From: Macrostomum hystrix
Taxonomy: Eukaryota > Animalia > Platyhelminthes
Direction: 5' to 3'
Assembly: GCA_950097015.1 (NCBI GenBank)
Contig: CATNEN010000038.1
Coordinates: 2,976,001 to 3,040,000 of the forward strand
Length of the DNA stretch: 64,000 nucleotides
Shown here: positions 31,658-54,759 of the stretch, piece after piece
Numbering within the stretch: position 1 is the stretch's first letter
How the letters are laid out: each line of letters opens with the position of its first letter
Translations under genes and position numbers: made by a program
Notes under the pieces: model-generated
Database searches by the model: none
What the model was told of the DNA's origin: nothing
The model's input: the letters and a program-made list of their open reading frames with translations, nothing else

Positions 31658-33455
31658 GATCACGGTGGATGCTTCAAGTGCTGTAAATTGATTGTCGGGT
31701 AATTTTGCCAATTTAGTAACGTGTGGCGCTTGAATCTAAAAACTGTCTGCTTTAGCTTGAGAATTGCGGCAAGTTTTGGTCACATAGACACTTATAAGGG
31801 AAGCTTTTGCCATAGACTATTTTCCTGGACTACGCGTCATTCTTTTTGAGCAAATTAATCTTTAAACTATAATAAGCTGATTCCACTTTTGGACGGTTTT
31901 GGGCTAAAATAATGATTTGCACTTTTGAGTGCAAAAACTACGGTTTGCTAAAGGTTTGCTAAACAGAGCAGTTTTGGAGCAGCTTATAATGGGACTATCT
32001 TAATCGGTTCATTGTATTGGGATGTCCCCAGAATCCTTTGTAAATGCTACTTCGGATGTCATTAGCAGAGTCTTGATGGTGATTTCATTATGATGTGCTG
32101 TAGTCTGCTGAGCAGCCTCCAGGCAATCTGAGTGGTAAGTGTAGTCTAGGTACGGTTGGAGGGCTCGGGAGTGGGGAAATTTGCGGTTACCAGTGCACGC
32201 AAACTTCTACTCGCCACCCCCTCCTTGTTCTCTCTATCATTCCAGCTTTGTATGCGCACTGACTCACATTGCACTTTAATTGAGATTAGGTGCTATCGCT
32301 TCGGTTCGGAAGAAGACTGGCAGAATATCGCTCAAATGCTCCTACTATAAGTAGAGCACAGTCCGACGAATAAACGGGATGGTGTTTGCATGATTTTCAA
32401 AGTGTTCGCTTCAAGTATCCTATTCGAGCAGGCTAGTTTTCTTCGTGCGTTTAGAGTTTTAGTTTCCAGTTTGCAGTTTAGAATTCTGTCTTTCACCTTT
32501 CCTTTGTGTTCAGTCTAAAAGACAGAAACATGCTATTTCTCTAAGAACAAGATTCCTTGGGACTTAAAAAATTCCTCACTCCTGACCATCCATTGTGGGA
32601 AAACTTAGCAATCCAAGCCTGACTACCCGGTTGCTCCACTGCTACGAAGCATTCAGTGTTGAGGCCGGTAAACCCCCTCTGAGACTTAGCGTCCCCTGTG
32701 TTGGCTATTTTACCAATTTTGCGTGCCCTTATTTGTTTTACCAGTTGGTCCCTTCCCTGCTCTGCCATTGGCTGGCTCTTATTGGCTGAAAAGATTCAGA
32801 CAGGCGGGAATTCCGTGAGCGTGCAAAACTGCCATGAAAAAAAACGTTAAAAACGGCCCAAAAATACTGACACCCTAAAAACACCAACTAAATATTAACT
32901 AGTGAGGATAGCGACTAAGCTAAACCACACAGCGGCGATGTCTAACTTGTCACAGGACTGGGGGCTAGATACTAAGCCTAGTAACTAGTGACTCACTATC
33001 CAGTAGCTGTCTATCGAAACAGCGGACGCGGCTGTTGCCCGTCTATATATATCAGCGACGTTACCGGATGCCATGATAAAACTTCTAATGACGTCGCCCT
33101 CGGACTTCGGCGTTTGCCAATCATTCGTCTGAAAGACATCGAACGTCTTCGGTTTTTATAACCATTAAAGAATTTCACGTGTTTCTTTCAAAAATATTTT
33201 ACTTGCATGACTAATGACAAAAGGACCTTCTCACAACAAGCTTTGCAAAGTAACTGTAGAAACTAAAGGGCTTATCGTCCACGAAGGTAGAGGAGCAAAA
33301 ATTACCTAACAGAAATGGAGAAGAATGAAAAGTCGAAAAAACTATTTGTAAAAAAGAGAAAACATACCACGACAGTTAAATTGTCTTATTGCTTCGTGAA
33401 AGAAGCAACCTAGCTCCTAGATAATTACGGAAAAAAGTCTTTACGAACAGCAGCT

Positions 33456-34628
33456 TTAACTATTTACAACTTGGTCCAGCACGACGCTCTGAAAGTCATC
33501 CCTGATCCAGATGCCGTCCCAGGCAGTCAGCGTACTCATGTTCAGCTTCTCAAGGGGTCGCTGCGCAGAGAAGAGGCTATAGTTCCGCTCATGAAAAAAT
33601 TCTACGATTTTAAAAAAATTCGGCGAAGTGTGAGAAGTCAATGTCAGGTTGGAGCGCCAGAACTCCATCTGGACTGCCACGATCTTTCTCTCCTTGAACA
33701 GCCGCTCGCCAGTGGAGAAGAAGATGTGCTCGCTGGTCTCGATGTCGATCTTCATGACCACCAGGTCCGTGGTCACGCTGCTCAGAAGGTCATCGGCCCT
33801 GCCGGTCATCACGGGGATCGTGTCGGTCATGACATCCTTGTTGATCGTGGCACCGCCAACATTGCACCGTTCGGTATCAAAGTTGAGATACTTCAGAGAC
33901 ACGGAGTTGTGGAAGTACAACCACATCAGCTTCAGCTTGGGGTCGGAGCGCCAGTTCATGTCGTTGGCGGACATTCGGATCCTGATGAGGTTCCTGATGT
34001 TCGCGTCCACAGCCATCGTCGGTATGCCGGCATCCCTGGCCTGCAGTGTGTAGGCTCCGATGTTGCAGCCGACATCCATGAAGGTGACGGATCCTGTCGC
34101 GAACTTCTGAGCAATGGATAAAATCACTGTCACTTGTTCGGCCTCCCAGTTATGCATTGAAGACAAGATGAATCCGGACACAATGTCTTCAGGTGGGTAG
34201 GTGTAGATTGTGACGTTTCTACCCGTCAGCACGCTGGAAAGGTAGCCTTGGATGGCCGTTTTTTTCACCCTATTCAAGAGCTGAATTGGCAGTTTTTCTC
34301 TGATCTCGCATGGCGGAAACTTATTGTCAATCACCGCGTAGGCCGTCTGGTTCTGGCACAGACGCTGACGCAGTGTCGGGTGCAGGAAATCGATATCTCG
34401 GAGCTCCCAGTAGCCAGGGCATGCTTGTGGTGATGGCAACACGGAGCCTGGATGCTCTGAAAACAGCTTGTTGAGCTTTTCATCCTCGATTCTTTCAATG
34501 TTTGTACTAAATAAGGAAAACTGCGGCCATGCGTTCAACTGTCGGCTCCAGTACATGAGAATGATTAGCGTACAGCCAGCTAGAGCGATGAGGATGCTGT
34601 AGATTCGCACTTTCAGCTTGAATGCCAT
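33456..34628 (-). CDS. FkbM-family (Methyltransf_21-like) SAM-dependent methyltransferase, type II membrane protein, copy 1 (~390 aa)
   Basis: Signal anchor IYSILIALAGCTLIILMYW; motif I FMDVGCNIG; VVMKIDIETSE; VQMEF. Intronless. Likely ATG at 34628. Confidence 0.88.
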   Translation of the reverse strand: MAFKLKVRIYSILIALAGCTLIILMYWSRQLNAWPQFSLFSTNIERIEDEKLNKLFSEHPGSVLPSPQACPGYWELRDIDFLHPTLRQRLCQNQTAYAVIDNKFPPCEIREKLPIQLLNRVKKTAIQGYLSSVLTGRNVTIYTYPPEDIVSGFILSSMHNWEAEQVTVILSIAQKFATGSVTFMDVGCNIGAYTLQARDAGIPTMAVDANIRNLIRIRMSANDMNWRSDPKLKLMWLYFHNSVSLKYLNFDTERCNVGGATINKDVMTDTIPVMTGRADDLLSSVTTDLVVMKIDIETSEHIFFSTGERLFKERKIVAVQMEFWRSNLTLTSHTSPNFFKIVEFFHERNYSLFSAQRPLEKLNMSTLTAWDGIWIRDDFQSVVLDQVVNS

Positions 34629-35099
34629 CTTTGTTAAGAAAAAGCTTTCTTGTTTTGGTTCTCTGAATGCAGACGCAGGTAATAAAATTAGCAGTTTCTT
34701 TAGTGAATTACTCACGCTTTTATTTACTACTAATGTTTTATAGCTTGAAGAGCAGTTCTTGGTTGGCCCATAGCTAAGGCTGACTGACCCTTCTGGGCTA
34801 GCGCCCCGTGCACACCTCTGGACTGATGGCGAACCTAATCATCGCACCTATCTTCTAAGACCTCTCTCATGATAAGAGCTTTGAAAATCTCGAGACCCAC
34901 CGTATCTAAGAAGAGAGGCAAACACCTGCCAGATTACCTTTCTCTCTTTTTTCGTCTCGATAGAAAGCAGCTATTGCTAGAAACGAACAATTCCTAAGCT
35001 CCAGTTTCATGCGCGCCTTCAATGCACAGCCCTTGCCTGATCATTTCTTCGAGAGAGACGGGGTTGCTGGGTAAACAAACTTCTCAAATAAAACGGAAA

Positions 35100-35470
35100 G
35101 CTAATCATAACAATACTAATATTTGAAGGAGGGCTGCGGCAATGGCACATCATTTGGTGACACTAGACCCGCAGCCAGCAACGAGGCAATTCTGCCCATG
35201 CCACTGACTCCTGAGGACATACTCACACAGATACCGTACGCAGGCATACACTTACACAGGTGTGTACATCTGCCCTGACTTTCTCATCGTCAGGCAGTGT
35301 ACACTTTCACTGTGCCTTGGAGCTTGGCCCCAAAGGGCGTAAATTGCACGACAAGCCCCCAAGCCTTCTCTCCGCGGCTGCGCAACAAATGAATATGCCC
35401 TCGCTTCGCGGAATTGAGCTCAGGGACCTTGGTGCGAGGGGCAAACGCGATTGCTACTCTGCCACCCGAC
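35100..35470 (-). mobile_element. tRNA-derived SINE family A, near full-length copy
   Basis: Reverse complement of 24929-25290 over its whole length. Confidence 0.85.
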
Positions 35471-36049
35471 TACTAAACGGAAAGCTAGGGACTGCTTTTA
35501 CCGAGCCATCGTGGACCATAGTAGACATAGCCAGGACTGCTAAACAACACTACACAACAGTGTTGTTGTCATTATGGCATAGATAAATAGGCATAAACTT
35601 ATGTGCCTTGTTTTAGCCCAGAATTGTCTACTTGACGCCGTAGAGCAGCGCTCTCATTTCACACTGAGATACAGCGTCAGGACTAGCTTAAACTGTGAAC
35701 GAGAATAGGCCGTTTTCACAGCATGTTTGCGAGGCCATGTAGCTCCAGTTTATGAGAGTTGAATTGCTATGCTCCTTATGCAGTGCATGGAAATCTGGAT
35801 TTGTAAACACACTAAAACTTGCGCATTCAAAACTTCTGTCCTTTGAATTTCATTGCACTGACCATCCAAAGCTTCCAATTGACAAATTTTCATATTCGCA
35901 CTGAAGAAAGGCGAACATTTGTTCATGTTTTACTATTAGTAAGGTGAATGTCGGAGGTGAGAGGTAAAGAGTTTAAAGCGTTAGTCTCTCACACCAAGGG
36001 TTTCTTGCAAAGCTAGCGCTAGACCTCAGCTGTGACGTCATCGCACTTC

Positions 36050-37575
36050 AGGAGGTGTCTATCAGAGCCTTGGACAACTTGGTATCCGGTTGGACACACC
36101 TCGGTGGATCAACGAGGCCGTGGAGGAATCGGAGCGCTGATTGGCCCGAGACTGCAGTAGAGCTATCACTGCTCTTCCTTGTCACCCGGATGCTTCGGGT
36201 AAGTGTCCGGCTTTGCGGCCGAAATGCTCGCCTGTTCTGTGTTTTCGCGCCCCTGCCAACCCGCCCGGATGACACAGTTCTTGTCTTCGGTTCCGCGTAT
36301 CTCCGAGCGGTCGCTGTTTGTCACGCCCAACGAGAACGGCAGCACTCAATCGCTGGAGGACTCCCTGGAATGGCAGGATATGGACATCACACGCTTCCGC
36401 TCCCAGCAGGCTCGCGACTTTTGTAGGCTGCAAGAGGAGGCAGTGGAATGCGCGTTGCTGGTTTGCTACGCGAAGGCTGGCACAGTTCGACCACGTGTCG
36501 TGCGCTTCCGGCAGCGCCGCCGCGCTGTCAACTGCCTCACTATCACGCCGCTGGCTCTGCGGTCCGATCATCGGCTCCTCGTCTGCCACCCCGATCCCCT
36601 CTACCGCCCGCCGAAGCGGCTACCGCGGCGCTACTACCGCGCTCTCAAAGACGCTGGAACACACCACCCCATTGTTAGCGCTTTCAAGCGTCGAGGCGCG
36701 AGTACGCGGATGTGTGGGCTGACTGTCTATTTGCAGCAGACTGCTGTCGATGCGGTCATCCAAGCTGTCTCTGCCGCTGTGCCAGACGCCAGAGGGCGTA
36801 GTCTTAATGGCCTGGTCTGCCATTAATTGTCTGACGAGGCGGAAGCGTCGCATCCAGCTAAACCTGGCAGGTGACACTCCGGATGAGCGCAGGAACGAGC
36901 TGCGCGAGTTCTTCACCGACATTGTGAAAGCGCCATCTCCCCCGCTGCCCAGTATCCTGACGCTGCCGACAGTGTTGCCGTCGGAGGAGAGCTTCTGTGT
37001 AGCGCCAGGCATCATGGCCGATGTTTGCCCAGAAGACACGAGGCGGCAAAGCGCTTGGTCCGGACGAGGTGCCCATCGAGGCGCTGTGCATCCACTGTGT
37101 GGCCAGTCAGATCAACCGCGTGCTTTTCGATAAGACGGAGTGGTTGGCGTGGCGCACATCACCGCTATTCCTGCGAAGCCGGTCACCACACTGTTAGAGG
37201 AGCACAGAATCTGCCAGCGATCCTGCGCCACGACTCCTTCGAGACATCCTCCGGGATGCTTCAGGGAGGACACGCTAGCGCCGTTCCTATTCGTCTTGGT
37301 GCTTGACTGGTTGCATCGAAGTACTCTGTCTACAGACGACGAAGATTATTTCCTACTGCGCCGACGTCAACCGGAAAGGTGGCACGCCGTGGGCTCGCTT
37401 GCTTTCGTTCTGTGAGGGCGGTCCTGCAGTCCAAGGCCCTACCTGTTCGCCAGAGAGTGATGCTGTTCCAGGCGGTTGTCGAGACCGTCCTGCTGTCCAA
37501 AGCCGAGACCTGGACACTATCAGACTCGCTCGAACAGCAAGTAAACGTGGCGCACGCATAGATGGTTGTTCACTG
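36050..37575 (+). mobile_element. Degenerate non-LTR retrotransposon (RTE/RTEX-like) remnant with APE endonuclease and RT fragments
   Basis: Endonuclease traces NENG, FDHV, RSDHRLL; RT motif FETSSGMLQG/DTLAPFLFVLVLDW (frameshifted at ~37268); C-terminal LFQAVVETVLL..AETWTL. Multiple frameshifts and deletions. Confidence 0.8.
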
Positions 37576-37948
37576 TGCCAATAGATGATTTTGTAATGTG
37601 CCAATAGATGATCGTGTAATGTGCCAATAGATGATTGTGTAATGTGTCAATAGATAGTTGTGTACTGCGCGAATAGATGATTGTGTAATGTGCCACCAAT
37701 TGATGATCGTGTAATGTGCCAATAGATGATTGTGTAATGTGCCAATAGATGATTGTGTAATGTGCCAATAGATGATCGTGTAATGTGCCAATAGATGATT
37801 GTGTAATGTGCCAATAGATGATCGTGTAATGTGCCAATAGATGATTGTGTAATGTGCCAATAGATGATCGTGTAATGTGCCAATAGATGATTGTGTAATG
37901 TGCGTGATGATTGTGTAATGTGCCAATTGATGATTGTGTACTGTGCCT
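37575..37948. repeat. 23-bp minisatellite (TGTGCCAATAGATGATTGTGTAA)n
   Basis: Period 23 (37741, 37764). Confidence 0.95.
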
Positions 37949-38636
37949 ATAGATAATTTTATGCTAATCGATGTTTGTTACGCGGCTACAGTTTATTTAT
38001 TTATTTTGAGTGATTACGGCCAAATAATACTACTTACTAAATAATAATACTCGTATGTAAATATATATTTAACTATCTGCGATTTGAATGTTAAATTGTG
38101 CACATATTCACAGAAGAGAAAGCTACGAAAGCTCGTAGATATTTAAACTTTTTCTTCAACGCAAAATTCTAGGCAAACATTTAATTTCGAAGTACACTTC
38201 AAGCGCAGTAATAAGTTTCTATTTCACGGCCGCTAACGCCTAGCGACGTATTCTAGCAGAATTCTGCAGATATATTAATTTGACACTACCGAGATACTGA
38301 CAGTTAAAAAATGTGCTCAACATTTTCTCTTGAAAACACTGCACTTAACTTCGTGCAAAACGATAAACATAAATTTACACTGGAATGAACACCAGACTAT
38401 TTGGTCAGAGGAACTCAAAGTTACACAGGAGCTGATAATTGTTAATCGTTTTAAATAAAACTAGGCTACGCACGCATTGGACCAACAGATAAAAACAGAT
38501 AGAAAAATAAAAATGTCCACTATAAAAAAAGGAATTAAAAAAATAGGATCAAATAAACAAACTAAGGTTTTGCACGGTTCTAGCGCGGACAGATAATGAA
38601 GGCATTATTTCATCAGAGTTCAGAAATCACCATTCT

Positions 38637-39876
38637 TCAGGGCCTGCCACGCACAGTTTCAAGGAAGTCATTCCTGATCCAGATACCGTCCCAGTCAGTG
38701 AAGGTCCTCAGGTTGAGCGGAACGTTCAGGTTACCCAATGAAAACAGACTGTAATTGCGCTCTGTGAAAAAGCTGACTATTTTGTCAAAGTTCGGCGAAG
38801 TGTGAGCGGGAGCGGAACCCACCGTCTTCCAGAACTCCATCTGCACGGCCACGATCTTCTTCTCCTTGAACAGTCGCTGAGCGGTTGAAAAGAAAATGTG
38901 CTCGCTGGTCTCGATGTCGATCTTCATGACCACCAGGTTGGTCTTGACACTTGTCAGCAGATCGTCGCCCTTGCCGGTCATCACGGAGATCGTGTCTGTC
39001 ATGACGTCGCTGTTGGAATGAGCGCCGCCAACGTTGCACCAGCCAGCACCGAAGTTGAGAAACTGCAGGGACACGGAGCTGTGGAAGTACATCCACATCA
39101 GCTTCAGCTTGGGGTCGGACAACCAGTTCATGTCGTTGGCGGACATTCGGATCCTGATGAGGTTCCTGATGTTCGCGTCCACAGCCACCGTGGGGATGTC
39201 GGCCTCTCTGGCCTGCAGGCTGTAAACGCCGATGTTGCAGCCGATGTCCATGAAGGTGACGGATCCGGCGGGGAACTTCCTTGCGATCGACAGCGTCACT
39301 GCCACTTGGCCGGCTTCCCAATTGTGCGAGGATATCACACTGTTTGACACAATGTCCCCTACTGGGTAGGTGTAGATGATCACATTTTTCAGTGCGCTTC
39401 ACTGCGCTTCTGATGAAAGTTCTTACAGCCGTCTTGTTGAGCCTCTTCAGCAGCTGGATCGGCAGGTTTCCGCTGATCTCGCAGGGTGGAAACATATTAT
39501 TGACCATTGTGTAGGCGACCTGGTCTTGACACAGTCGCTCAGTCAGTGCCGGGTGCTGAAAGTTGATGCCCCTGAGCTCCCAGTAGCCCGGGCAGGCCTG
39601 GGCCGCGGCCGGAGGCGAGCCTTTTTTCTCCTCAAACAGTTTGTCTAACTCCGAAACTACCTTGACTTCTTCTACGTTGACTACCATGCTGGCCTTCGTA
39701 GGTTGAACCTTTTCTACCTCCGGTGGAGGTTTAGGCTGGTTGGGTTGGGCTTTTTCGGCCAGTTTAATTGGTAGCTGCAGGGACAACTGGTTCTTATAAA
39801 CCAGTAGCATAACAGCGGCGGCGGTCACCACACTAATCAAGGCGAAAAGCTGAGTCTGCTTGGAAGTAATCGCCAT
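38637..39876 (-). pseudogene. FkbM-family methyltransferase copy 2, frameshifted at ~39385-39410
   Basis: The N-terminal half (anchor, CPGYWELRG, PPCEI) is in ORF 38785-39876 and the catalytic half (DIGCNIG, KIDIETSE) is in ORF 38637-39383. There are 13 nt where copy 4 has 9 nt. Confidence 0.75.
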
Positions 39877-42699
39877 GTTAGTATGTCTGCAGCTCGCTTA
39901 TTTTAGTACAATGATCAAGCGTCTCTTATTGAAGCTGATGGTTCCCAAAAGTTTTATTTGACAGTTTAAATAGCTTTCGCTTCTTGCGTGGGGCTGGGCA
40001 GTGCTTTTTCAACCACTGCTCAAGGGTAGAGAGATGGAGCGGCTGTGGCATCCGTAGATTGGCTGTGCTCAGGGAAGATGTCGCCACAATAATGTACGCT
40101 CTCTGCGCACTCTCCATGGAGGTTGTCACTCCTCCCTGTGTGGCCCCCCATTCTCTCTCTGTCCTTCTCATGACTTTCCCGCACACTCAGGACTGGCAAC
40201 CAGTGGGTCTTCTCAGCTGCTATGCCCTCTGGGGTGGTCGTTTGGGAAAGGCTCAGCTATCGTCACCTCCTCTATTCTAGATTCTCGGTATGTATTCTAG
40301 GCATGTACACTGGGCCAAGCCATCCTGAGCTGTGCTCTAGTATGCATCTTTCTACGTTACATTGCAACGCTGCACAAGCTGTGTATATTTCAGACCTATT
40401 CTCTTTTGAATTGAATGAGTGTGATTGCTGTGCGATTGTGCGAACCTTGGGGGCTTACTAAGAGAGGCAGAACTAGGCATTTGCCTGGCACTAAAACACA
40501 ACAATTTTTAAGTATTTTCTAAAACCTTTTTTCAACCATTAGGTGAAGGAGGTAACATGAGTCTCACTCATATGAAAATAGAATTTGCCAAAAGTGCAGA
40601 ACTTTTTACGGTTATTTTTTTCTTTCTGTTGTAGGGCTCTTCTAATTATCTTACAGCTGCCACCACGTTGTCGTAGGGCTCCTTCCTCTTTGGGTTTATA
40701 TACCACCGATACTCCTTTATTAAATATTAACAATTGCTTATTTCATACCTTGACTTAATCCTTGAAATAACTCTTAGTTTCCTTTGTCTATGACTTAGTT
40801 ATTCTTCATAGGCTATGTATCCTCTTATTTCAGATGCATAAATTGCTTCAATTGGCCAGATAGGCTGCTTTCCTTCCCAAAATTTGGTAGCGTTCTCACG
40901 AGTGTCCGAGCGGCAAGACACTTCTTCCTCTCCTTACTTACTCACAACTGTCTGGCTCTCTGGTTTGTTCCCAGTCTTTCAAGGCTTCCAATGGACTGAA
41001 GTTGCCCAACTTTGCACACAGTGCTTTTCCACCAATCGGGATTTACCCTTCTTTTCTTTAGTTTTTACACTCCACTGCTTTTTATGACTATTCCCTTCTT
41101 TATTCTTTCGAATATTCCTGGCTTGTGTATTAACACGGACATGCTTTTCTCCTCTCTGAAAAAATTGAAAAGCACTTTGAGATTTATTCTCCTTTATTGC
41201 ACTCCGAACTGGGCACGGGGCACCGGTTGGTTTTTCTAGGGCTAAATTGCGGCTATTTTTATACAAAAATTGGGGGTGGATGACACAGTGTATTAAAACA
41301 AAGAATAAAATCGGGAAAAAGCATTTGGCGGGGATTCAAGTTATAAATCTACGGTAAATTTGGGCCTGCCTCATTTCCTTTTATCCTCGTTACTCTCATT
41401 TTTTAGTCCAATCATTATAAGCTCTGAAAGAATATTTTAAGAAAAAATCGGCACCCCTTTTATTGCGTTCGCAGTTGATTAAAGAAAATAATTCATTTTA
41501 TTTATCTGGGGCTAAAATGCCTATATATAAGCCTCAGAAAATGGAATTGTTTTACTATAAAATTACCATAATAGTGTTACTAGTGTTACTAGTGTTAATT
41601 TATGGTCGAGTATTTGATTTAAAAAATGTTTAAAGACCCTAAGACTAGGCTCAGGTCTTTCTGAGTGGATAAGAAATGTGATTTTTACACGTATTTTTAG
41701 TAGTTATTAGCAGGCAGGTTGGCTCAGGCAAGCATCCTGCTTTGCCAATGTTATTTTATGTATGTTTGTATGAATTAAGAAAATTTAAGTATCCAATTTA
41801 TAGTATAAATTATTAGGGCAGTTTTAAATTGGTACGTAAGCGAAAAAACGAAAGCCAGAACGAGCATTTAATCATTACGAATAATTTGATATTTTTACGA
41901 GTATTAAAAAAGGCAAAACGTAATAGTTCACCGCACGCACGAACATAGGGAATGAGGGAAAAGCTAGAGGGGTAAAATTAAGTCTAAGCAATCCAAATAA
42001 TGATTATCAAGCAATTAAAATATATTTATTTGACTTCTTATCACGAGGTGGTCAAGTAAAAAAGTACGAGTTAAATAATCTTGTAGGTCAAAAAAATGAG
42101 TAAGTTAAAATTTAATTTATGTAGTGGGCCAACTTTAAATTCGTATTAATAGTTTAATTTACGAAATGCTTTATGATAGAAGTGGTTTTACTATGCAAAA
42201 TATCCTCAATATAATTTGTTTTAAAATTCAAAATTATTTCAAAATAGTTTCTAAATCATTTCTAAATCATTTCTAAATAATTTCTAAATGTCAAAATTGA
42301 CGAAATGTCTAATTGAAAAAACTTGCTAATATAGTATGAATACTGATACAAGCCATTTAGCGAACTAAGAATACAAGCAAATTAAGAGCTTGAGAAGGAG
42401 TTGTTTATTTTATAAGGGAGAAATATTTCGTTTGAGAAGTTTCATTCAGTCAAATAGAGACTGAATTGTCGTGACCATCTGAGTCATTGGAACACCTTAT
42501 TGGACTGAGTGCCAATAAGTGTGAACAGTGCCTGAAACCGCTTGTGCCGAGTGAACTTTGCCGCGAACTCCATAAACCACAAAGTATCACAAATATCATT
42601 TTGGTTTTACGAAATGGGCTACTGCGAAGCCCATAAGCCACAGAAAGAATTTATGAAATAACCGGCCGGTGCCGCGAAATAGTTTATGCAATAAACACC

Positions 42700-43219
42700 C
42701 TGATCGGGAGAATAGCACAAGGGAAGCCGGATAATATTTGGCTCCTTGCTTGGTCTCCAGCGTGAAGTAGAAAAATCTCAAATACTCGTTCAGCATTGTC
42801 GACTCCATGGTAACCAGATCGGCCGTGCTGGTCTTGTTTCGAACAAACCCCGCAAAGCGGCCTCCATGCTCGTACATCTGCTCTCGACTTGTACGGGGCA
42901 AAGCCTGCAGCACAGCCGTATCCATTGCGGATACGTCAGCCGAAGTAATGTCTTTAGACGTTACACTCACATCGGCCGAATTGCATGGTTTGTTCCGCAT
43001 GAGATCCTCGGGGCAAGCCTCTTCTTCGCTTGGCAGTGGTGGCAGAGCATCATCGTTACCGCATTCAATGAATCGTATGAACTCCATCAACTCTTCGTCA
43101 TTCGCCTCGTCACGTCCACCCGTACTCAAGTCGCTGAGAAAGTTGACCTCATTTCCATTCAAGCCGTCAATGCATTCAATCGGCAAATTCCACCAATTTA
43201 TCATTCGTATGAGTGGCAT
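42700..43219 (-). mobile_element. Crypton / DUF3504 (ZMYM-QRICH1-KCTD1-type) tyrosine-recombinase N-terminal remnant
   Basis: DLVTMESTMLNEYLRFFYFTLETKQGAKYYPASL fits the L..yL..Fy...r.k.G..Y.p.SL pattern preceding DUF3504. Similarity stops right after it; AT-rich surroundings. Confidence 0.55.
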
Positions 43220-44158
43220 GAATAGATGTTAAAACAGGAACATGTATCCTCTGCTGCGGAGTTCCAGCTTATAAGGCCACTTGTAACTTCATTTAACATG
43301 TTTCGTCTATGGTAATTTCAGACTGCTCCGCTTAACTTTCGTTCCACTTTACTCCACAAATTTTTCGCTCCAAACGTTTAGTCTATGGCCATGATTTAGC
43401 TTGCGCCATGTGGAAAATGCCTATAACACAAATCCCTAGAATCACAAAGTGAACAATTCCCGTCTGGAAAGTTGTGTCCTAGCCGTTTTGAATTGGCTTT
43501 TGGACGAAAATAGACACAATTCCACTATCGAGAGGTCACGCTTCACACACAACTGCCTTAGCGTCGAGGCCGGTAGGCATGTAATCATACATTTTATTGT
43601 ATTGCATTTAGTTTTGTTGCTAATAGTTAAATTTACCGATAAAAAACAACACCAACGAAAATTGGTCAAATTTCAAAACACTTCTAGAAATTTATTCTCG
43701 CAACATTTTCTCGGACTGAGGAAAAAATACTAAGAAAATGAATCGATCATCTAATGAAGTGAGGCTATAGTGAGCAATGATAGGTCGATCATTGCTTGTG
43801 TACCAACGGCTGGTGTAACTACAACCAGATTTTGTTACACAGAAGGCATAACAAACAAAGCAATAGCAATTGCTAAAGCAATAGCAGGAGTATTTTAAAA
43901 AATGCTCAAAAGAGGCTGTTTAAATATTCACGACTAAAATATTCTTCATGGGCAGAATTGCATTCCTTAACGACATGCACCCTTCATCTAAATGAAAAGC
44001 GCAGTCATGAGCTAGATTCGAAATATTTTTTTTCTGCGTTTTCTAACAAAAATATATGAAAAAAGTCAAATGGATTAATAAAATTGTAAAGGACTTTTTC
44101 ACACCAGATTTCAATATCTGAAAAGATATAAAAAACAATGAATGGTCAATCCTCAGTT

Positions 44159-45376
44159 TCAATAACCGCGCACTTCTTTGAGAAAGTCGTTCCTGACCCA
44201 GATGCCGTCCCACTCTCGCACGTCCTTCGTCAGGTCCACCGGTTGGTGCAGGCTGGTGAGGGGGTACAGGGTGTAGCTGCGCTTGGTGAAAAAGTCGACA
44301 ATCTTGGCGAAGGAGGGCGACATGGAGGCGGGCATTGCGGCGTCGGGGCGGAAGAACTCCATCTGGACCGACACGATCTTTCTCTCACTGAACAGCCGCT
44401 CGCCAGTGGAGAAGAAGATGTGCTCGCTGGTCTCGATGTCGATCTTCATGACCACCAGGTCCGTGGTTACGCTGCTCAGAAGGTCATCGGCCCTGCCGGT
44501 CATCACGGGGATCGTGTCGGTCATGACATCCTTGTTGATCGTGGCTCCGCCAACATTGCACGTAGAAGTGCCGAAGTTGAGGTACTGCAGGGACACGGAG
44601 CTGTGGAAGTACATCCACATCAGCTTCAGCTTGGGGTCGGAGTGCCAGTTCATATCGTTGGCTGACATTCGAATTCTGGCTAGGTTCCTGATGTTTGCGT
44701 CCACAGCCACCGTCGGTATACCGGCATCCCTGGCCTGCAGTGTGTAGGATCCGATGTTGCAGCCGATGTCCATGAAGGTGACGGAGTCGGTGCGAAACTT
44801 CTTGACAATCGACAGGGTGAAGGTGACCTGCTCTCTCTCCCAATTGTGAGATGAAATAAGACCGTCGGACACAATGTCTCCAACGGGATAGGTGTAGATC
44901 GTGACTAGTCTGGCGGTCATTGCACTGATAATGTATGTTTTCACAGCCGTCCTGTTGACGCTGCTCAGCAGCTGGGCCGGCAAATGCTCGCTGATCTCAC
45001 ATGGAGGATATCTATTGTTAAGCTTCTCGTAGGCCACCTGGTTCTTACACAGTCGCTGAGCCAACTCTCGGTGCTGAAAGTTGACTCCTCTGAGCTCCCA
45101 GTAGCCCGGGCAGGCAGACGAGGAATTTGAGTCATTATTATGCTGCGCGAACAACTTGTTGAGCTCATCCTCCGAATCTTGCGGCTGGACCCTGGGCCGG
45201 CCATTGTTAGTGCTTTGGGCTGGTCTGGGCTTACTATCGGCATCGGATTTCACGATCAGCCGAGCCAGCTTGTGTGAAGGCTGTTGATTGCTGTAAATAT
45301 ATAATAGCAGGCCCGTCCCAATGGCTACTGTAGCGATCATGGCATACAGCATTGTCTGCTTCGTGTGAAGCGTCAT
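44159..45376 (-). CDS. FkbM-family methyltransferase copy 3, type II membrane protein (~405 aa)
   Basis: Anchor MLYAMIATVAIGTGLLLYIY; DIGCNIG; KIDIETSE; VQMEF. Intronless. Likely ATG at 45376 (MTLHTKQ). Confidence 0.88.
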   Translation of the reverse strand: MTLHTKQTMLYAMIATVAIGTGLLLYIYSNQQPSHKLARLIVKSDADSKPRPAQSTNNGRPRVQPQDSEDELNKLFAQHNNDSNSSSACPGYWELRGVNFQHRELAQRLCKNQVAYEKLNNRYPPCEISEHLPAQLLSSVNRTAVKTYIISAMTARLVTIYTYPVGDIVSDGLISSHNWEREQVTFTLSIVKKFRTDSVTFMDIGCNIGSYTLQARDAGIPTVAVDANIRNLARIRMSANDMNWHSDPKLKLMWMYFHSSVSLQYLNFGTSTCNVGGATINKDVMTDTIPVMTGRADDLLSSVTTDLVVMKIDIETSEHIFFSTGERLFSERKIVSVQMEFFRPDAAMPASMSPSFAKIVDFFTKRSYTLYPLTSLHQPVDLTKDVREWDGIWVRNDFLKEVRGY

Positions 45377-46179
45377 TCTTTGGCACCGAGGATCAGAGAA
45401 GCCGCCTTGAGGGCTGTCAAAATATTGTTTAGTTAGCAAGGTTTTGCCAGAACTAGGTGAAGTAAGTGCTAGCCTGCTTCTAATTCAAAAGCTTGTGCAA
45501 AGTAAAGAGAGTTGGAAACAAAACAGACAAGTCCCGCTGCTGCTGTATTGGCTGCCACACACTGTTCAAGACCTGCCTCCAGCCAATGCTCTCAGATGAT
45601 ATTATATTCCTACCCCATCTCGGGTACTCAAGCATGGACTCACCCAAGCCCTGCCCTCTGTCTGTGTTGCCTGTGTGAGCTCACAATCTGACGTACTCGC
45701 CTCAGAACCCCAGTCCGGCCTCAGAGGTCTCAGCCATTGTGTCAACCGCCCCACACCTGTCCTGGCGCGCTTGTATTAGCCTGTACATTCGCCGTGTACA
45801 TTCAGGCTCATTGTTTTAGCCGAGGCAGTGTACCGTGACTCCACTGTGCATGGGAGAGTAAGGAAAACACCTCCACTAGCTGGTACGCATTCGTTAGCAG
45901 CATTTTTCATTTGCTTGCAGTCCGTTTCATTTTCTCGTTACGGGCTAATATGAGCTGGCTAAAACAATAAGATGTAAGATTCTTCAGTTGTGTGAGGAGC
46001 TCGTAGTGTGAAATGAAATTGTGTTTTTACTTATTTCAGAACAGTAGTATGATACGAAAATTATTTTTTTTTTGTTTCAATAAAACCGATGTATATTTTA
46101 GCATGGGGTTTTTTAAAAGAACTCACAAGGTTGGGAAAATGACAAAGGTGCATAAAGTGGGAGATAAGAGAGTGGTAAA

Positions 46180-47470
46180 AGACAGCGGGGGCATGGGAGA
46201 GGGGAAATGACAGCGGGGATGGGAGAGGGGAAATGACAGCGGGGATGGGAGAGGGGAAATGACAGCGGGGATGGGAGAGGGGAGATGACAGCGGGGATGG
46301 GAGAGGGGAGATGACAGCGGGGATGGGAGAGGAGAGATGACAGTATGGGGATGGGAGAGGGGAGATGACAGCGGGGATGGGAGAGGGGACATGACAGTAT
46401 GGGGATGGGAGAGGGGACATGACAGTATGGGGATGGGAGAGTGGAAAATGACAGTGGTGGATGGGAGATGGGAGATGACAGTATGGGGATGGGAGAGGGG
46501 AGATGACAGCGGGGATGGGAGAGGGGAGATGACAGTATGGGGATGGGAGAGGGGAGATGACAGTATGGGAATGGGAGAGGGGAGATGACAGCGGGGATGG
46601 GAGAGGGGAGATGACAGTATGGGGATGGGAGAGGGGAGATGACAGTGGGGATGGGAGAGGGGAGATGACAGTATGGAGATGGGAGAGGGGAGATGACAGT
46701 ATGGGGATGGGAGAGGGGAGATGACAGTATGGGGATGGGAGAGGGGAGATGACAGTATGGGGATGGGAGAGGGGAGATGACAGTGGGGATGGGAGAGGGG
46801 AGATGACAGTATGGAGATGGGAGAGGGGAGATGACAGTATGGGGATGGGAGAGGGGAGATGACAGTATGGGGATGGGAGAGGGGAGATGACAGTGGGGAT
46901 GGGAGAGGGGAGATGACAGTATGGAGATGGGAGAGGGGAGATGACAGTATGGGGATGGGAGAGGGGACATGACAGTATGGGGATGGGAGAGGGGAGATGA
47001 CAGTATGGGGATGGGAGATGGGAGATGACAGTATGGGGATGGGAGAGGGGAGATGACAGCGGGGATGGGAGAGGGGAGATGACAGTATGGGGATGGGAGA
47101 GGGGAGATGACAGCGGGGATGGGAGAGGGGAGATGACAGTATGGGGATGGGAGAGGGGAGATGACAGTATGGGAATGGGAGAGGGGAGATGACAGCGGGG
47201 ATGGGAGAGGGGAGATGACAGTATGGGGATGGGAGAGGGGAGATGACAGTGGGGATGGGAGAGGGGAGATGACAGTATGGAGATGGGAGAGGGGAGATGA
47301 CAGCGGGGATGGGAGAGGGGAGATGACAGTATGGGGATGGGAGAGGGGAGATGACAGTATGGGGATGGGAGAGGGGAGATGACAGTATGGGGATGGGAGA
47401 GGGGAGATGACAGTATGGGGATGGGAGAGGGGAGATGACAGTATGGGGATGGGAGAGGAGAGATGACAGA
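46180..47470. repeat. 26/28-bp G-rich polypurine minisatellite (GGGGATGGGAGAGGGGAGATGACAGTAT)n
   Basis: About 47 units with three G-runs each. Confidence 0.97.
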
Positions 47471-47619
47471 GGATTTCATGACTTTCATGACAAAAATGAA
47501 GCAATGGGGGCAGTAGTTGAATATAAGCAGTCAAGAATGCCGCACACTGAGCAACCCAGATACATTGTAAAGTGCAGTGAACTGCTTCGCAGTTATTTGC
47601 TTATGCTTTGTTAACCTAT

Positions 47620-47930
47620 GTTGCAGCCTAGTGGTTAGGGCGTTGGACTCACGATTTGAAGGTCGGGGGTTCGATTCCCGACACCACTGGAACAATTTGT
47701 GTCCTTTAGCAAGACACTAAACTCTGCATTGCTTCAGTTCACCCAGCTGTTAAATGGGAGCCAGGTGGAATAATTGGGATAACTGGAATAATGGAATGGT
47801 GTGGCGTCCCCCAGTCCATGAACTGAACTACGAGTATTGCACGCAGCCTTCAGATGCGCCGCGCATTAGCTGTCGGCTGCACATCTGGCCCAATTGGCGC
47901 AGGTTTAATAAATTAATCAATAATTAATTG
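47620..47930 (+). mobile_element. tRNA-headed SINE with a CORE-like central domain (family B)
   Basis: A-box region GCCTAGTGGTTAGGGC; B-box GGTTCGATTCCC; then TGTGTCCTTTAGCAAGACACTAAACTCTGCATTGCTTCAGTTCACCCAGCTGTTAAATGGG, resembling the CORE/MIR domain; AT-rich tail. Confidence 0.7.
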
Positions 47931-48752
47931 TTACGCAAGTTGTATTTTAACTGAAGTTTCAAGTTAAATGGTTTGTCAGAGAATAACGCAAACACAGCAT
48001 GGCGAGGATTCGCTGATATTGTGTTAGGATTTGGACTTAAGCCGTACCTGCATTTGAGGAGTACAAAGTCGTCTGTTTCTCGCAATTTCGACTTGAATCA
48101 ACAAATCAAATAAGCAGGAAATTTAGAGTAGACACAAGGGATTATAACTCGTTACTGTTGATAAGTACAGTAGTTTGAAATTGTGAACCGATTCGAAAAA
48201 TAGTCAATGTTTGATTGGCGGAATGGACAAGCTGTTGATAAACAGAATTAAAAAAAAGAGAGATTTAATTAGTTAACAATCAATATAACAAATAATTATT
48301 TTACTATCTTCCATTTGCTAAAATATAATAACAATAAAATTGTTAAATAATAGTTACAGGGTCTTTCTAGTCTAAAAGTTCAACTAATACGTCACCAGCA
48401 TCAATAGGTCGGAAAAAGCTGCAATTCTTTGACAATGGAGCAACAGCAGACGCATGATCTCACTTGAGAATTATCTCATATCGTATCGAAGAAATAAAAT
48501 CGATGCAAATTCTATTTAACGTCGACCTTAAAAAATTGCAACTAAATAAAAAAACAATAGGAAGGAGACATATTTCTGCTTGAAAAGCAGGCGATATTTT
48601 GGCAAACAAGTCTGAGGACCCTTCGCTAGCATTCAAATAGCACAATTTCAGACGCATAAATTCTGAGTTAAAAATTGAGTTAAGTAGTTAAGGACTCGCT
48701 TCCGCACTGACTACTCCCACAACCATATTACATAGCTTCCTGAGACAGTGGC

Positions 48753-49991
48753 TCATTTACCGCGAATGGTGCTCAGGTAGTCATTCCTGATCCAGATGCC
48801 GTCCCAGTCGCGGAAGGTATTCAGGTCGAGCGGTTGGTTCAGGTTGCCCATGGAAAACAGGGTGTAGCTGCGCTTGTTGAAGAAGTCGACGATCTTGGCG
48901 AAGTTTGGCGACGCCGAGCCTAGCAGGCCGGCGTTGGAGCGCCAGAACTCCATCTGGACTGCCACGATCTTTCTCTCCTTGAACAGCCGCTCGCCAGTGG
49001 AGAAGAAGATGTGCTCGCTGGTCTCGATGTCAATCTTCATGACCACCAGGTCCGTGGTTACGCTGCTCAGAAGGTCGTCACCCTTGCCGGTCATCACGGG
49101 GATCGTGTCGGTCATGCTGTCCTTGTTGGACGTGGCACCACCGACGTTGCACCAGCCGGTGCCGAAGTTAAGGTACTGCAGGGACACGGAGCTGTGGAAG
49201 TACATCCACATCAGCTTGAGCTTGCTGTCGGAGCCCCAGTTCATGTCGTTGGCAGACATTCGGATCCTGATGAGGTTCCTGATGTTCGCGTCCACAGCCA
49301 CCGTGGGGATGTCGGCCTCCCTAGCCTGCAGGCAGTACACGCCGATGTTGCAGCCGATGTCCATGAAGGTGACAGATCCGGCGGGGAACTTCCTTGCGAT
49401 CGACAGCGTCAAGGACACCTGACCGCCTTCCCAGCTATGGGACGAGATCACGCTACCGGACACAATGTCACCCGCTGGGTAGGTGTAGATGATCACATTC
49501 CGACTGGTCACTGCGCTCCTGATGTAGGTTTTGACAGCCGTCTTGTTGAGCCTCTTCAGCAGCTGGATCGGCAGGTTTCCGCTGATCTCGCAAGGTGGAA
49601 ACTTATTTTCCACCATCGCGTAGGCGACCTGGTTCTTGCAGAGTCGCTGCGCCAGTGCCGGGTGCTGAAAGTTGATGCCCCTGAGCTCCCAGTAGCCCGG
49701 GCAGGCCCTCGCGCTTGCCGGCATCGGGTTGTTCTTGTCGGACAGCAAGGTGTCAAGTTCGTCAACCTGCTTCGCGTCAACCGGCTTATCTCGCGCCGGC
49801 ACCGCCGCATCGGCCTGCTTCACCTTTCCCTGCCTGAGCTCCGAAGGTCCAGAAGAAGTGTTCAGTCGCGTGATTCGCTGCATGATGAGCTGCATGTGCA
49901 TTGTGGCCTGGCCACTGTGCAGCAGCCAGAGCACAGCTGCAATGGCCCCCACTGACAGGACAATGAACACAGTGGCCTGCTTCGATCGCAT
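48753..49991 (-). CDS. FkbM-family methyltransferase copy 4, type II membrane protein (412 aa)
   Basis: Anchor ATVFIVLSVGAIAAVLWLL; DIGCNIG; KIDIETSE; VQMEF. Intact ATG-to-stop ORF. Confidence 0.9.
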   Translation of the reverse strand: MRSKQATVFIVLSVGAIAAVLWLLHSGQATMHMQLIMQRITRLNTSSGPSELRQGKVKQADAAVPARDKPVDAKQVDELDTLLSDKNNPMPASARACPGYWELRGINFQHPALAQRLCKNQVAYAMVENKFPPCEISGNLPIQLLKRLNKTAVKTYIRSAVTSRNVIIYTYPAGDIVSGSVISSHSWEGGQVSLTLSIARKFPAGSVTFMDIGCNIGVYCLQAREADIPTVAVDANIRNLIRIRMSANDMNWGSDSKLKLMWMYFHSSVSLQYLNFGTGWCNVGGATSNKDSMTDTIPVMTGKGDDLLSSVTTDLVVMKIDIETSEHIFFSTGERLFKERKIVAVQMEFWRSNAGLLGSASPNFAKIVDFFNKRSYTLFSMGNLNQPLDLNTFRDWDGIWIRNDYLSTIRGK

Positions 49992-51084: not shown

Positions 51085-51772
51085 AACCGTGTGGACACAC
51101 ACTATCTAACACGTGGACCCACCCTGTCTAACAGGTGGACCCACCCTGTCTAACACGTGGACACACACTGTCTAACACGTGGACCCACCCTGTCTAACAG
51201 GTGGACGCACCTTGTCTAACAGGTGGACCCACCCTGTCTAACAGGTGGACACACCCTGTCTAACAGGTGGACTAAACCTGTCTAACAGGTGAACCCACCC
51301 TGTCTAACACGAGGACCCACCCTGTCTAACAGTTGGACACACCCTGTCTAACAGGTGGACCCACCCTGTCTAACAGGGGGACCTACCCTGTCTAACACGT
51401 GGACCCACCCTGTCTAACAGTTGGACACACCCTGTCTAACAGGTGGACTAAACCTGTCTAACAGGGGGACCCACCCTGTCTAACAGGGGGACCTACCCTG
51501 TCTAACAGGGGGACCTACCCTGTCTAACAGGGGGACCCACCCTGTCTAACAGGGGGACACATTGTCTGGCAGGTGGACACACCCTGTCTAACAGGTGGAC
51601 ACATCCTGTCTAACAGTTGAACACACTGTCTAACAGTTGAACACACTGTCTAACAGGTGGACACAAACTGTCTAACAGGTGGACACATCCTGTCTAACAG
51701 GTGGACACATCCTGTCTAACAGGGGGACCTACCCTGTCTAACAGGGGGACACATTGTCTGGCAGGTGGACGC
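51085..51772. repeat. 22-bp minisatellite (CCCTGTCTAACAGGTGGACCCA)n
   Basis: Period 22 with variants. Confidence 0.95.
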
Positions 51773-52625: not shown

Positions 52626-52731
52626 GCTAAAACGACCAGTCCCGTCCCGGTCCAAGGGCCACGAAAGAACAATTTCACCAAATCCACTTCCTAGGACTTT
52701 ATCGGTGTAAAAAATTGTGGAAAAAGTTGGG

Positions 52732-53795
52732 CTGTGGGACAGCGGGATAATGACAATCGGACAGCGGGATAATGACAGTGGGAGAGTGGGATAGAGACAG
52801 TGGGACAGCTAGATAATGACAATGGGAAAGCTGGATAATGACAGTGGGACAGTGGGACAATGACAGTCGGACAGTGGGATAATGACAGTGGGACAGCTGG
52901 ATAATGACAGTGGGACTGTGGGATAATGACAGTGGGACAGCTGGATAATGACAGTGGGACTGTGGGACAATGACAGTCGGATAGTGGGATAATGACAGTG
53001 GGACAGCTGGATAATGACAGTGGGACTGTGGGATAATGACAGTGGGACAGCTGGATAATGACAGTGGGACTGTGGGATAATGACAGTGGACAGCTGGATA
53101 ATGACAGTGGGACTGTGGGACAATGACAGTGGGACTGTGGGATAATGACAGTGGGACTGTGGGATAATGACAGTGGGACTGTGGGATAATGACAGTGGGA
53201 CAGCTGGATAATGACAGTGGGACTGTGGGATAATGACAGTGGGACAGCTGGATAATGACAGTGGGACTGTGGGATAATGACAGTGGGACAGCTAGATAAT
53301 GACAGTGGGACTGTGGGATAATGACAGTGGGACTGTGGGATAATGACAGTGGGACTGTGGGATAATGACAATCGGACAGCTAGATAATGACAGTGGGACA
53401 GTGGGATAGAGACAGTGGGACTGTGGGATAATGACAGTGGGACTGTGGGACAATGACAGTGGGACTGTGGGATAATGACAGTGGGACTGTGGGATAATGA
53501 CAGTGGGACTGTGGGATAATGACAGTGGGACTGTGGGATAATGACAGTGGGACTGTGGGATAATGACAGTGGGACAGCTGGATAATGAAAATGGGAAAGC
53601 TGGATAATGACAGTGGGACAGTGGGATAGAGACAGTGGGACAGCTAGATAATGACAATGGGAAAGCTGGTTAATGACAGTGGGACTGTGGTATAATGACA
53701 GTGGGACGTTGTGATAATGAGAGTGGAACAGTGTGACAATAGCAGTGGGACAGCGGAATAATGACATTGGGACTGTGGGATAATGACAGTGCGAC
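52732..53795. repeat. 21/22-bp minisatellite (GGGATAATGACAGTGGGACTGT)n
   Basis: Tandem copies with ACTGTG/ACAGCT variants. Confidence 0.95.
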
Positions 53796-54759
53796 AGCGC
53801 TAGGCGCCTGACGTTTTACCTCGTTTCAGCCCTCTGCAGCGTATCAATATAATTGGCATAATGCGCACAGATGAACGAAAATTTCTCTCCAGAATTAGGT
53901 CTCGAGAGAACAAAACTATATAATTTCGAATCCAAACGAACATAGAGTTGCTACACAAGAGCTAGAGACAGAGAACGAAACACTTGCCGAAGCATAAACG
54001 GAGGACCCAGAACGCAGTCGATGCGAAAAAGAGCAAAGCAACAACGTATTTAGATGATGAATCCCCATAAAACCCCACTATCTTCCTAGATAAACAGCCA
54101 GAGACAACTGTATCCAACAATATACTCGTAAATTCAACACATCTATAACGGCCCAGATGGTGAATAAAATTATTCGTCTACTGGTTATTCAAACGAAAAC
54201 AATGCATGGGCACCAACATTCAATACATGGCGAATCAAACAGCTCAAATTATCACCGACCTGAACAAACAAGCCGAAATAACACGACAAAATAGCAATGC
54301 AATCAACAGGCTCAACACAATTTGCTGTTGCCACCACAAGTATCGTCGTCTGCATGCAATGTTTTGATCTTAGCAGTGAACCAGAACCAGTTGCTGACTG
54401 GTCTACAACTCCCAGCTAAATGCCAGATGATGTCCAATGCACTGCGAATATGCATTTATGATGTGTAAAATGGTATTTTTCGAGCCTGAAAAATTCCCAA
54501 AGCAGGTTTAGTGTTCGATGAACGAGCAAAATTAAATTACGAATACCACCTGCCAAGACTTAACACAAGCAACTACCATGCCCGGCGAAAACCCCGAGGC
54601 GCTTCACACAGCGATATCGAGGCAAACTCCACCACCAGACCCCGCAGAAATATATTGAAGAAACCACGAAAATCCACCATTGCCCATCAACCGAAGAATA
54701 ACAGAAGAAGCATCGACAGGAAAGAAGAAGGCACATTAATGGCTGGATTCGTGGCTCAG

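Follow-up and report, generated by a model that had tools for sequence, protein, structure and literature searches.

A tandem array of single-exon FkbM-type methyltransferase genes in the flatworm Macrostomum hystrix: candidates for glycan O-methylation

FkbM-type methyltransferases (PF05050, TIGR01444) are the closest described relatives of four genes that we examined in a 64-kb window of the Macrostomum hystrix genome (C38:2976001-3040000, in a 220-Mb assembly of 42 contigs); the window is the whole stretch of DNA analysed, and positions are counted from its first letter unless a C38 coordinate is given. The four genes are head-to-tail paralogues, all on the minus strand, at 33456-34628, 38637-39876, 44159-45376 and 48753-49991. 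With the FkbM family, including the solved Methylobacillus protein 2py6, their products have in common the class I Rossmann fold, the D-x-G-x-N-x-G motif, an acidic residue after strand 2 and the D-[IV]-E-x-x-E motif. The bacterial FkbM entries examined showed no N-terminal anchor, stem or Cys-containing pre-domain like those of the window proteins, and FkbM proper differs in having a polyketide as its substrate. A related family, PF05575, contains RfbT (WbeT) of Vibrio cholerae, which methylates the O-antigen polysaccharide (PMC9929944). PF05575 is matched by 8 of the 93 aligned homologues of the window proteins and by 22% of the members of a mollusc Atlas cluster. However, RfbT/WbeT is bacterial and cytoplasmic, and the window copies stay below reporting for PF05575 at E <= 0.1.

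Nearer relatives are found in animals. Proteins labelled "Methyltransferase FkbM domain-containing" in Macrostomum lignano, Mytilus, Crassostrea, Ostrea, Saccostrea, Lymnaea, Mactra, Gigantopelta and a nemertean have the same basic N-tail, anchor, catalytic domain and motifs as the window proteins, which they match at E-values from 1e-84 to 1e-9, with a best outside identity of 38-42%. The automatic FkbM-domain annotation of the relatives in M. lignano and molluscs was already known, and our literature searches found no paper that assigns a function to animal FkbM-domain proteins. The Golgi sugar methyltransferases of plants belong to other protein families. Those acting on xylan glucuronic acid and on pectin, supplied by GoSAMT, are anchored type II lumenal enzymes that use S-adenosylmethionine (SAM) imported by MFS_5 proteins (bioRxiv 10.1101/2021.07.06.451061), and they provide an analogy of mechanism rather than of family membership.

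Glycan O-methylation itself is well described in invertebrates. O-methylated glycans have been documented in flatworms and molluscs (PMC5936828, PMC3155867, PMC8699351), and planarian N-glycans show extensive, selective O-methylation of mannose, galactose and N-acetylglucosamine (GlcNAc) (PMC5936828, PMC3155867). The enzymes responsible in invertebrates were called unidentified in 2018 (PMC5936828), as were those of Caenorhabditis elegans in 2023 (PMC7614267), in agreement with the initial annotation of the window, which had described them as poorly defined. In C. elegans, glycan methylation requires the MFS_5 protein SAMT-1, a proposed Golgi importer of SAM (bioRxiv 10.1101/2021.07.06.451061).

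The array comprises the following features (ORF, open reading frame):

33456..34628, minus strand: copy 1, single-exon coding sequence, 390 amino acids plus stop, ATG start (MAFKLK...)
34554-34610, minus strand: copy 1 anchor, residues 7-25
38637..39876, minus strand: copy 2, frameshift-split paralogue
38785-39876, minus strand: ORF in whose frame the N-terminal piece of copy 2 lies
38637-39383, minus strand: ORF of the C-terminal piece of copy 2, 248 amino acids
about 39390..39398, minus strand: copy 2 frameshift site, 4 extra nucleotides relative to copies 1, 3 and 4 in the codon alignment
39799-39855, minus strand: copy 2 anchor, residues 8-26
44159..45376, minus strand: copy 3, single-exon coding sequence, 405 amino acids, ATG start (MTLHTKQ...)
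45296-45352, minus strand: copy 3 anchor, residues 9-27
48753..49991, minus strand: copy 4, single-exon coding sequence, 412 amino acids
49920-49976, minus strand: copy 4 anchor, residues 6-24
within copy 4, minus strand: stem at about residues 25-96 (disordered at 46-67) and catalytic domain at about residues 97-410
49341..49361, minus strand: motif I of copy 4 (DIGCNIG, residues 211-217), the glycine-rich SAM-binding loop of the Rossmann fold

The array is old. Its four members are single-exon paralogues, of which three are intact; the initial annotation was right about the number, order and single-exon structure of the genes, and its view of all four as whole genes holds for copies 1, 3 and 4 but not for copy 2, which carries a 4-nt frameshift. 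The open frame of copy 1 extends upstream of its ATG as far as a GTG at 34715. Protein identity among the intact copies is 61-65%, and copy 2 shares 71% identity with copy 1 over its C-terminal 248 residues. At the DNA level the copies can be aligned only over about 940 nt of coding sequence (75-84% identity), while the stems, untranslated regions and spacers or flanks are not alignable, as expected for old duplicates rather than a recent segmental repeat. Pairwise synonymous divergence (dS) in the well-aligned parts is 0.64-0.87. The ratio of nonsynonymous to synonymous divergence (dN/dS) lies mostly at 0.20-0.31, and all four copies have accordingly been under long-standing purifying selection.

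At the level of the clade the copies clearly belong to the FkbM-type SAM methyltransferases, as the initial annotation had proposed. An exhaustive search recovered 334 cluster representatives at E <= 1e-3, and 87 of the 93 aligned homologues match PF05050 (E <= 1e-3, with a best value of 4e-18). The feature-based Atlas comparison returned no neighbours other than FkbM-domain clusters, which come from diatoms, molluscs and rotifers. A hidden Markov model search, which the initial annotation had suggested as a check, was less clear-cut for the window copies themselves: against PF05050 copies 1 to 4 score 22.0, 20.2, 23.3 and 15.9 bits, so that only copy 3 exceeds the cut-off of 22.7, and against TIGR01444 they score 22-29 bits with a cut-off of 37.7.

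Structure prediction, another suggested check, agreed with this assignment. The AlphaFold2 model of copy 4, for which the 93 homologues served as input, has a mean predicted local distance difference test (pLDDT) score of 89.5 and adopts the class I SAM-dependent Rossmann fold. Class I SAM methyltransferases make up all of its top structural matches, with Z values reaching 12.3; FkbM 2py6 is at Z 10.4 with a root-mean-square deviation of 3.0 Å over 164 residues, the lowest deviation in a group of many matches tied at Z 10-12. Foldseek against the PDB gave low template modelling (TM) scores of 0.23-0.35 to many unrelated class I methyltransferases, which fixes the fold class only. In a sequence search of solved structures, motif I of copy 4 aligned with motif I of solved SAM methyltransferases, the matches being generic ones to this motif, with FkbM 2py6 at E 1e-3.

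All four copies have the cofactor-binding and catalytic motifs DIGCNIG (DVGCNIG in copy 1), VDAN and DIETSE. Near-invariant columns of the alignment are all kept in the window copies (D211, G213, N215, G217, D/E234, N282, G284, D321, E323, E326, E348 and W396 in copy 4 numbering), and D211, G213, N215 and G217 are present in 86-92 of the 93 homologues. Methyltransferase activity is likely kept, given the intact columns and dN/dS values of 0.2-0.3. The initial annotation had regarded GCNIG, VDAN and DIETSE as unusual. Among the 93 homologues they proved to be ordinary variants of the wider eukaryotic FkbM clade: the residue after D-x-G, the C of GCNIG, is C in 36, A in 33 and S in 19; the acidic position of VDAN is D in 68 and E in 23; and the T position of DIETSE is T in 20 and G in 40. 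The clam Mactra, for instance, carries both DLGCNIG and VDAN.

The order of parts that the initial annotation had described is present in every copy. An N-tail of 5-8 residues with one or two K/R is followed, at about residues 6-27, by a single hydrophobic stretch of 19-22 residues with a Kyte-Doolittle (KD) hydropathy of 1.96-2.54, and no second hydrophobic segment above KD 1.6 was found in any of the four copies. After the anchor comes a stem of 43-70 residues, variable among the copies in both length and sequence, then the conserved segment CPGYWELR..LC.[ND]Q..PPCEI, and then the catalytic domain, with the motifs DIGCNIG, VDAN, CNVGG, DIETSE, MEF and WDGIW. In the model, copy 4 forms a long helix (residues 2-45), a disordered stem (46-67) and a compact alpha/beta domain (about 97-410). 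An anchor, a disordered stem and a globular domain make up the standard layout of Golgi enzymes, and the hydropathy and charge analysis and the model of copy 4 thus agree with the Golgi-type architecture claimed for these proteins, its lumenal orientation being a prediction.

That prediction is drawn from the family. By the charge-difference rule, the more positive flank of an anchor faces the cytosol. An N-terminal anchor is present in 25/25 full-length paralogues of the genome and in 69 of the 86 outside homologues that start with Met, and the positive charge is greater on its N-side than on its C-side in 22 of the 25 paralogues and 57 of the 69 homologues. From this family-wide bias, a cytosolic N-tail and a lumen-facing catalytic domain (type II, single-pass) are predicted. 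As the charge difference of copy 3 is zero, the prediction is made for the family as a whole rather than gene by gene. Cys134 (the PPC cysteine), which lies ahead of the catalytic core, is kept in 75 of 80 homologues and would fit a disulfide bond formed in an oxidising compartment.

The array is part of a larger family. In a six-frame search of the genome, 41 matches were obtained; they represent about 30 loci, many of which sit in further tandem pairs or arrays. In a quick maximum-likelihood tree with support from the Shimodaira-Hasegawa approximate likelihood ratio test (SH-aLRT), the phylogeny that the initial annotation had called for, the four window genes fall within a well-supported ten-gene clade (SH-aLRT 99), all ten members of which come from the M. 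hystrix genome. Within this clade the window genes are not one another's closest relatives: copies 4 and 2 form a pair, copy 3 falls among dispersed copies, and copy 1 branches at the base. The M. lignano counterparts of other subfamilies of the genome are 62-78% identical to them, against only 35-42% for the window clade. The window clade may therefore be a lineage-specific expansion, as judged against a limited sample of M. lignano. Of the proposal that these genes form a distinct, expanded subfamily, the expansion stands, with about 30 loci, and the idea that unusual motifs set it apart was too strong because the mollusc relatives share them.

Outside the genome, the named relatives come from M. 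lignano, bivalves, gastropods, one nemertean and one dinoflagellate; many others are metagenome proteins without names, and the rotifer relatives are known from the taxa of an Atlas cluster. A word-indexed protein search returned three M. lignano proteins both with a single protein and with the 93-row profile as query. The phyletic range rests on 30 cluster look-ups and the Atlas taxa, a small sample in which no nematode or vertebrate member was seen, although absence is not thereby shown.

Copy 2 appears as two overlapping ORFs, 38785-39876 and 38637-39383, because the 4-nt insertion shifts its frame. We compared public runs of the same organism at this site. The broken form is carried by X1, which is genome-like (depth 99.5), and by one contig of X2, both identical to the window sequence. 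A contig of X3, from another sample of the species (depth 53), lacks the extra nucleotides (1+3 nt) and has three substitutions, which place copy 2 in frame; this allele reads SAVTGKNVIIYTYP, fits the family pattern and is otherwise identical to the window in its flanks. The lesion of copy 2 is accordingly polymorphic between samples. Relative to the other copies, dN/dS is 0.20-0.24 for the C-terminal piece of copy 2 and 0.23-0.46 for its N-terminal piece, as expected if the lesion is recent.

Transcription of copies 1 and 2 is probable. Contigs of four public runs were aligned to 33450-39449, which contains both copies, in 30 bins. X1 covers 30/30 bins. X2, X3 and X6, which come from two studies, have 33-48 million letters of contigs each and no record of the kind of library, cover 33450-34869 (copy 1 and upstream sequence) except for the bin 33850-34049, and 38142-39449 (copy 2 and about 495 nt past its stop, the examined stretch ending at 39449). 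These three runs also cover a high-copy repeat at 35050-35450 and show nothing over 35450-38050 except traces of depth below 2 at 35450-36249. Coverage confined to gene bodies is the pattern of a transcriptome assembly, and it is on this ground that we consider transcription probable.

The same contigs bear on the exon structure. The contigs of X2, X3 and X6 are colinear with the genome and have no joint within the coding sequence of copy 1 or copy 2, and nearly all family members genome-wide match as one stop-free open frame in the six-frame search. The coding sequences are therefore intron-free, as originally claimed, although introns in the untranslated regions may exist. Contigs of two or three runs diverge from the window at 33505 in copy 1 and at 38845 in copy 2, and the sequence past 38845 resembles a more distant paralogue (LFREFDILV versus LFKEKKIVAV). 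Splicing was set aside as the cause of these breaks, as the sequence past 38845 reads as that distant paralogue; they are most likely unitig joins between paralogues and may otherwise represent a recombinant or alternative transcript.

Given the above, glycan O-methylation is our best reading of the four genes, and we regard it as an even call. Each gene would encode a single-pass type II protein in which a short N-tail in the cytosol is followed by a signal anchor, a flexible stem and a lumenal C-terminal class I SAM methyltransferase domain. The enzymes would transfer methyl groups from SAM, brought into the lumen by an MFS_5 (SAMT-1-type) transporter, to sugar hydroxyls of glycolipids or of N- or O-glycans in transit through the Golgi, and the paralogues may differ in acceptor specificity. 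The case is circumstantial but coherent. The predicted site of the catalytic domain, the lumen of the secretory pathway, is the place of glycan synthesis. The M. hystrix genome has two MFS_5 loci (about 333 bits). A second array, at C38:14210493-14250863 (L036-L041), consists of FkbM genes that the tree places in the window's own clade; one of them is frameshifted or split and another has an internal TGA. Exons of glycosyltransferase family GT32 (PF04488) lie among these genes at C38 positions 14214766, 14218930, 14238319 and 14247950, and two of the GT32 ORFs exceed the Pfam cut-off. A similar pairing of FkbM and GT32 genes is found near C38:13.81-13.86 Mb, and we take this interleaving as modest evidence for glycan O-methylation.

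Several points weigh against glycan O-methylation. The glycan acceptor is a prediction for the clade as a whole, and there is no solved close relative from which the acceptor pocket could be read. With the exception of copy 3 against PF05050, none of the window copies exceeds the curated family cut-offs. The charge difference is zero for copy 3 and small for copy 2, and transcription is judged from the pattern of coverage. MFS_5 transporters occur in most eukaryotes, so that their presence discriminates little. More than 100 GT32 matches occur across the genome, only two of about 17 FkbM loci have such a match nearby, and these two loci may share a single duplication history. Among the neighbouring ORFs examined in the window, no glycosyltransferase or other glycosylation gene was found. 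Finally, FkbM, the founding member, methylates a polyketide hydroxyl (PMC12085832), and membership in the family therefore does not fix the substrate. The last two points also speak for the same enzymes, in the same topology, acting on side chains of secreted or lumenal proteins, on lipids or on small metabolites, and protein, RNA and small-molecule methyltransferases do occur among the structural neighbours at equal Z. Such an acceptor is in our judgement unlikely, if still the most credible of the alternatives, as RfbT, the characterised FkbM/RfbT relative for which we confirmed a substrate, acts on a sugar (PMC9929944) and eight homologues match its family, PF05575. Moreover, the named relatives belong to phyla with methylated glycans, GT32 genes are interspersed among close paralogues at other places in the genome, and the abundant O-methylated glycans of flatworms are still without an enzyme (PMC5936828).

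The hydrophobic N-terminus could instead be a cleaved signal peptide, in which case the proteins would be soluble secreted enzymes or binding proteins, for example of mucus or gland secretions, and not Golgi residents. An N-tail of only 5-8 residues with a hydrophobic segment starting at residue 6-9 is signal-peptide-like, and an expanded, fast-diverging, lineage-specific clade resembles families of secreted proteins. However, the 19-22-residue hydrophobic run exceeds the typical core of a signal peptide and in the copy 4 model continues as a single long helix (2-45), the whole layout matches that of standard Golgi enzymes, and to our knowledge SAM is not expected outside cells, which makes secretion improbable. 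Less probable still, and in our view very unlikely, is that the catalytic domain is cytosolic on an N-out anchor or that the copies are inactive, whether with a non-catalytic role or as decaying duplicates. The weak charge differences of copies 3 and 2 would allow the reversed orientation, but the N-side is the more positive in 22/25 paralogues and 57/69 homologues. Likewise, the frameshift of copy 2 in the assembly and the weak family-model scores would suit pseudo-enzymes, whereas the near-invariant motif residues are all kept, dN/dS is 0.2-0.3 in most comparisons including the halves of copy 2 (up to 0.46 in its N-terminal piece), and an in-frame allele of copy 2 exists.

Other features of the window are as follows. 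The neighbouring ORFs gave a probable cytochrome P450 exon and low-complexity artefacts. The former, an open frame at 5794-6960 on the minus strand, matches the first 261 positions of the P450 family (PF00067, E 1e-30) and is probably one exon of such a gene. Three G-rich minisatellites lie within or beyond the array:

46189-47469: G-rich minisatellite, 28-nt period, 47 copies
51091-51753: G-rich minisatellite, 22-nt period, 30 copies
52734-53797: G-rich minisatellite, 22-nt period, 48 copies

These G-rich repeats explain a strong GC skew and give rise to artefactual long ORFs rich in Ser, Pro and His on the minus strand (46061-47534 and 52691-53767). Between copies 1 and 2, at 35130-35450, there is a dispersed repeat of about 320 nt with at least 3,863 candidate copies genome-wide, of which the 40 that were scored share about 90% identity; it has very high depth in X1 and is seen in the transcript-like runs as well. 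It looks like a short interspersed nuclear element (SINE) or a miniature inverted-repeat transposable element (MITE), and an Rfam scan of 30000-53000, which includes this repeat, gave no match. A GC-richer patch (54%) at 36055-37133 has several overlapping ORFs of 120-207 amino acids on both strands; the DNA-like run covers it and the transcript-like runs do not.

Planarian, mollusc and nematode glycans prominently feature O-methylated mannose, galactose, fucose and GlcNAc, and these sugars are targets of innate-immune lectins. The genes described here are further members of the known FkbM family, for which the proposed role is plausible, and the array provides a concrete, intron-free and probably expressed set of candidates with a conserved architecture predicted to face the lumen. 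More broadly, though with somewhat less confidence than an even call, we suggest that the lineage-expanded, predicted lumenal FkbM clade of flatworms, molluscs, nemerteans and rotifers may contain the long-sought glycan O-methyltransferases of animals, and that its paralogues would encode the residue- and linkage-specific methylation patterns of planarian and mollusc glycans.

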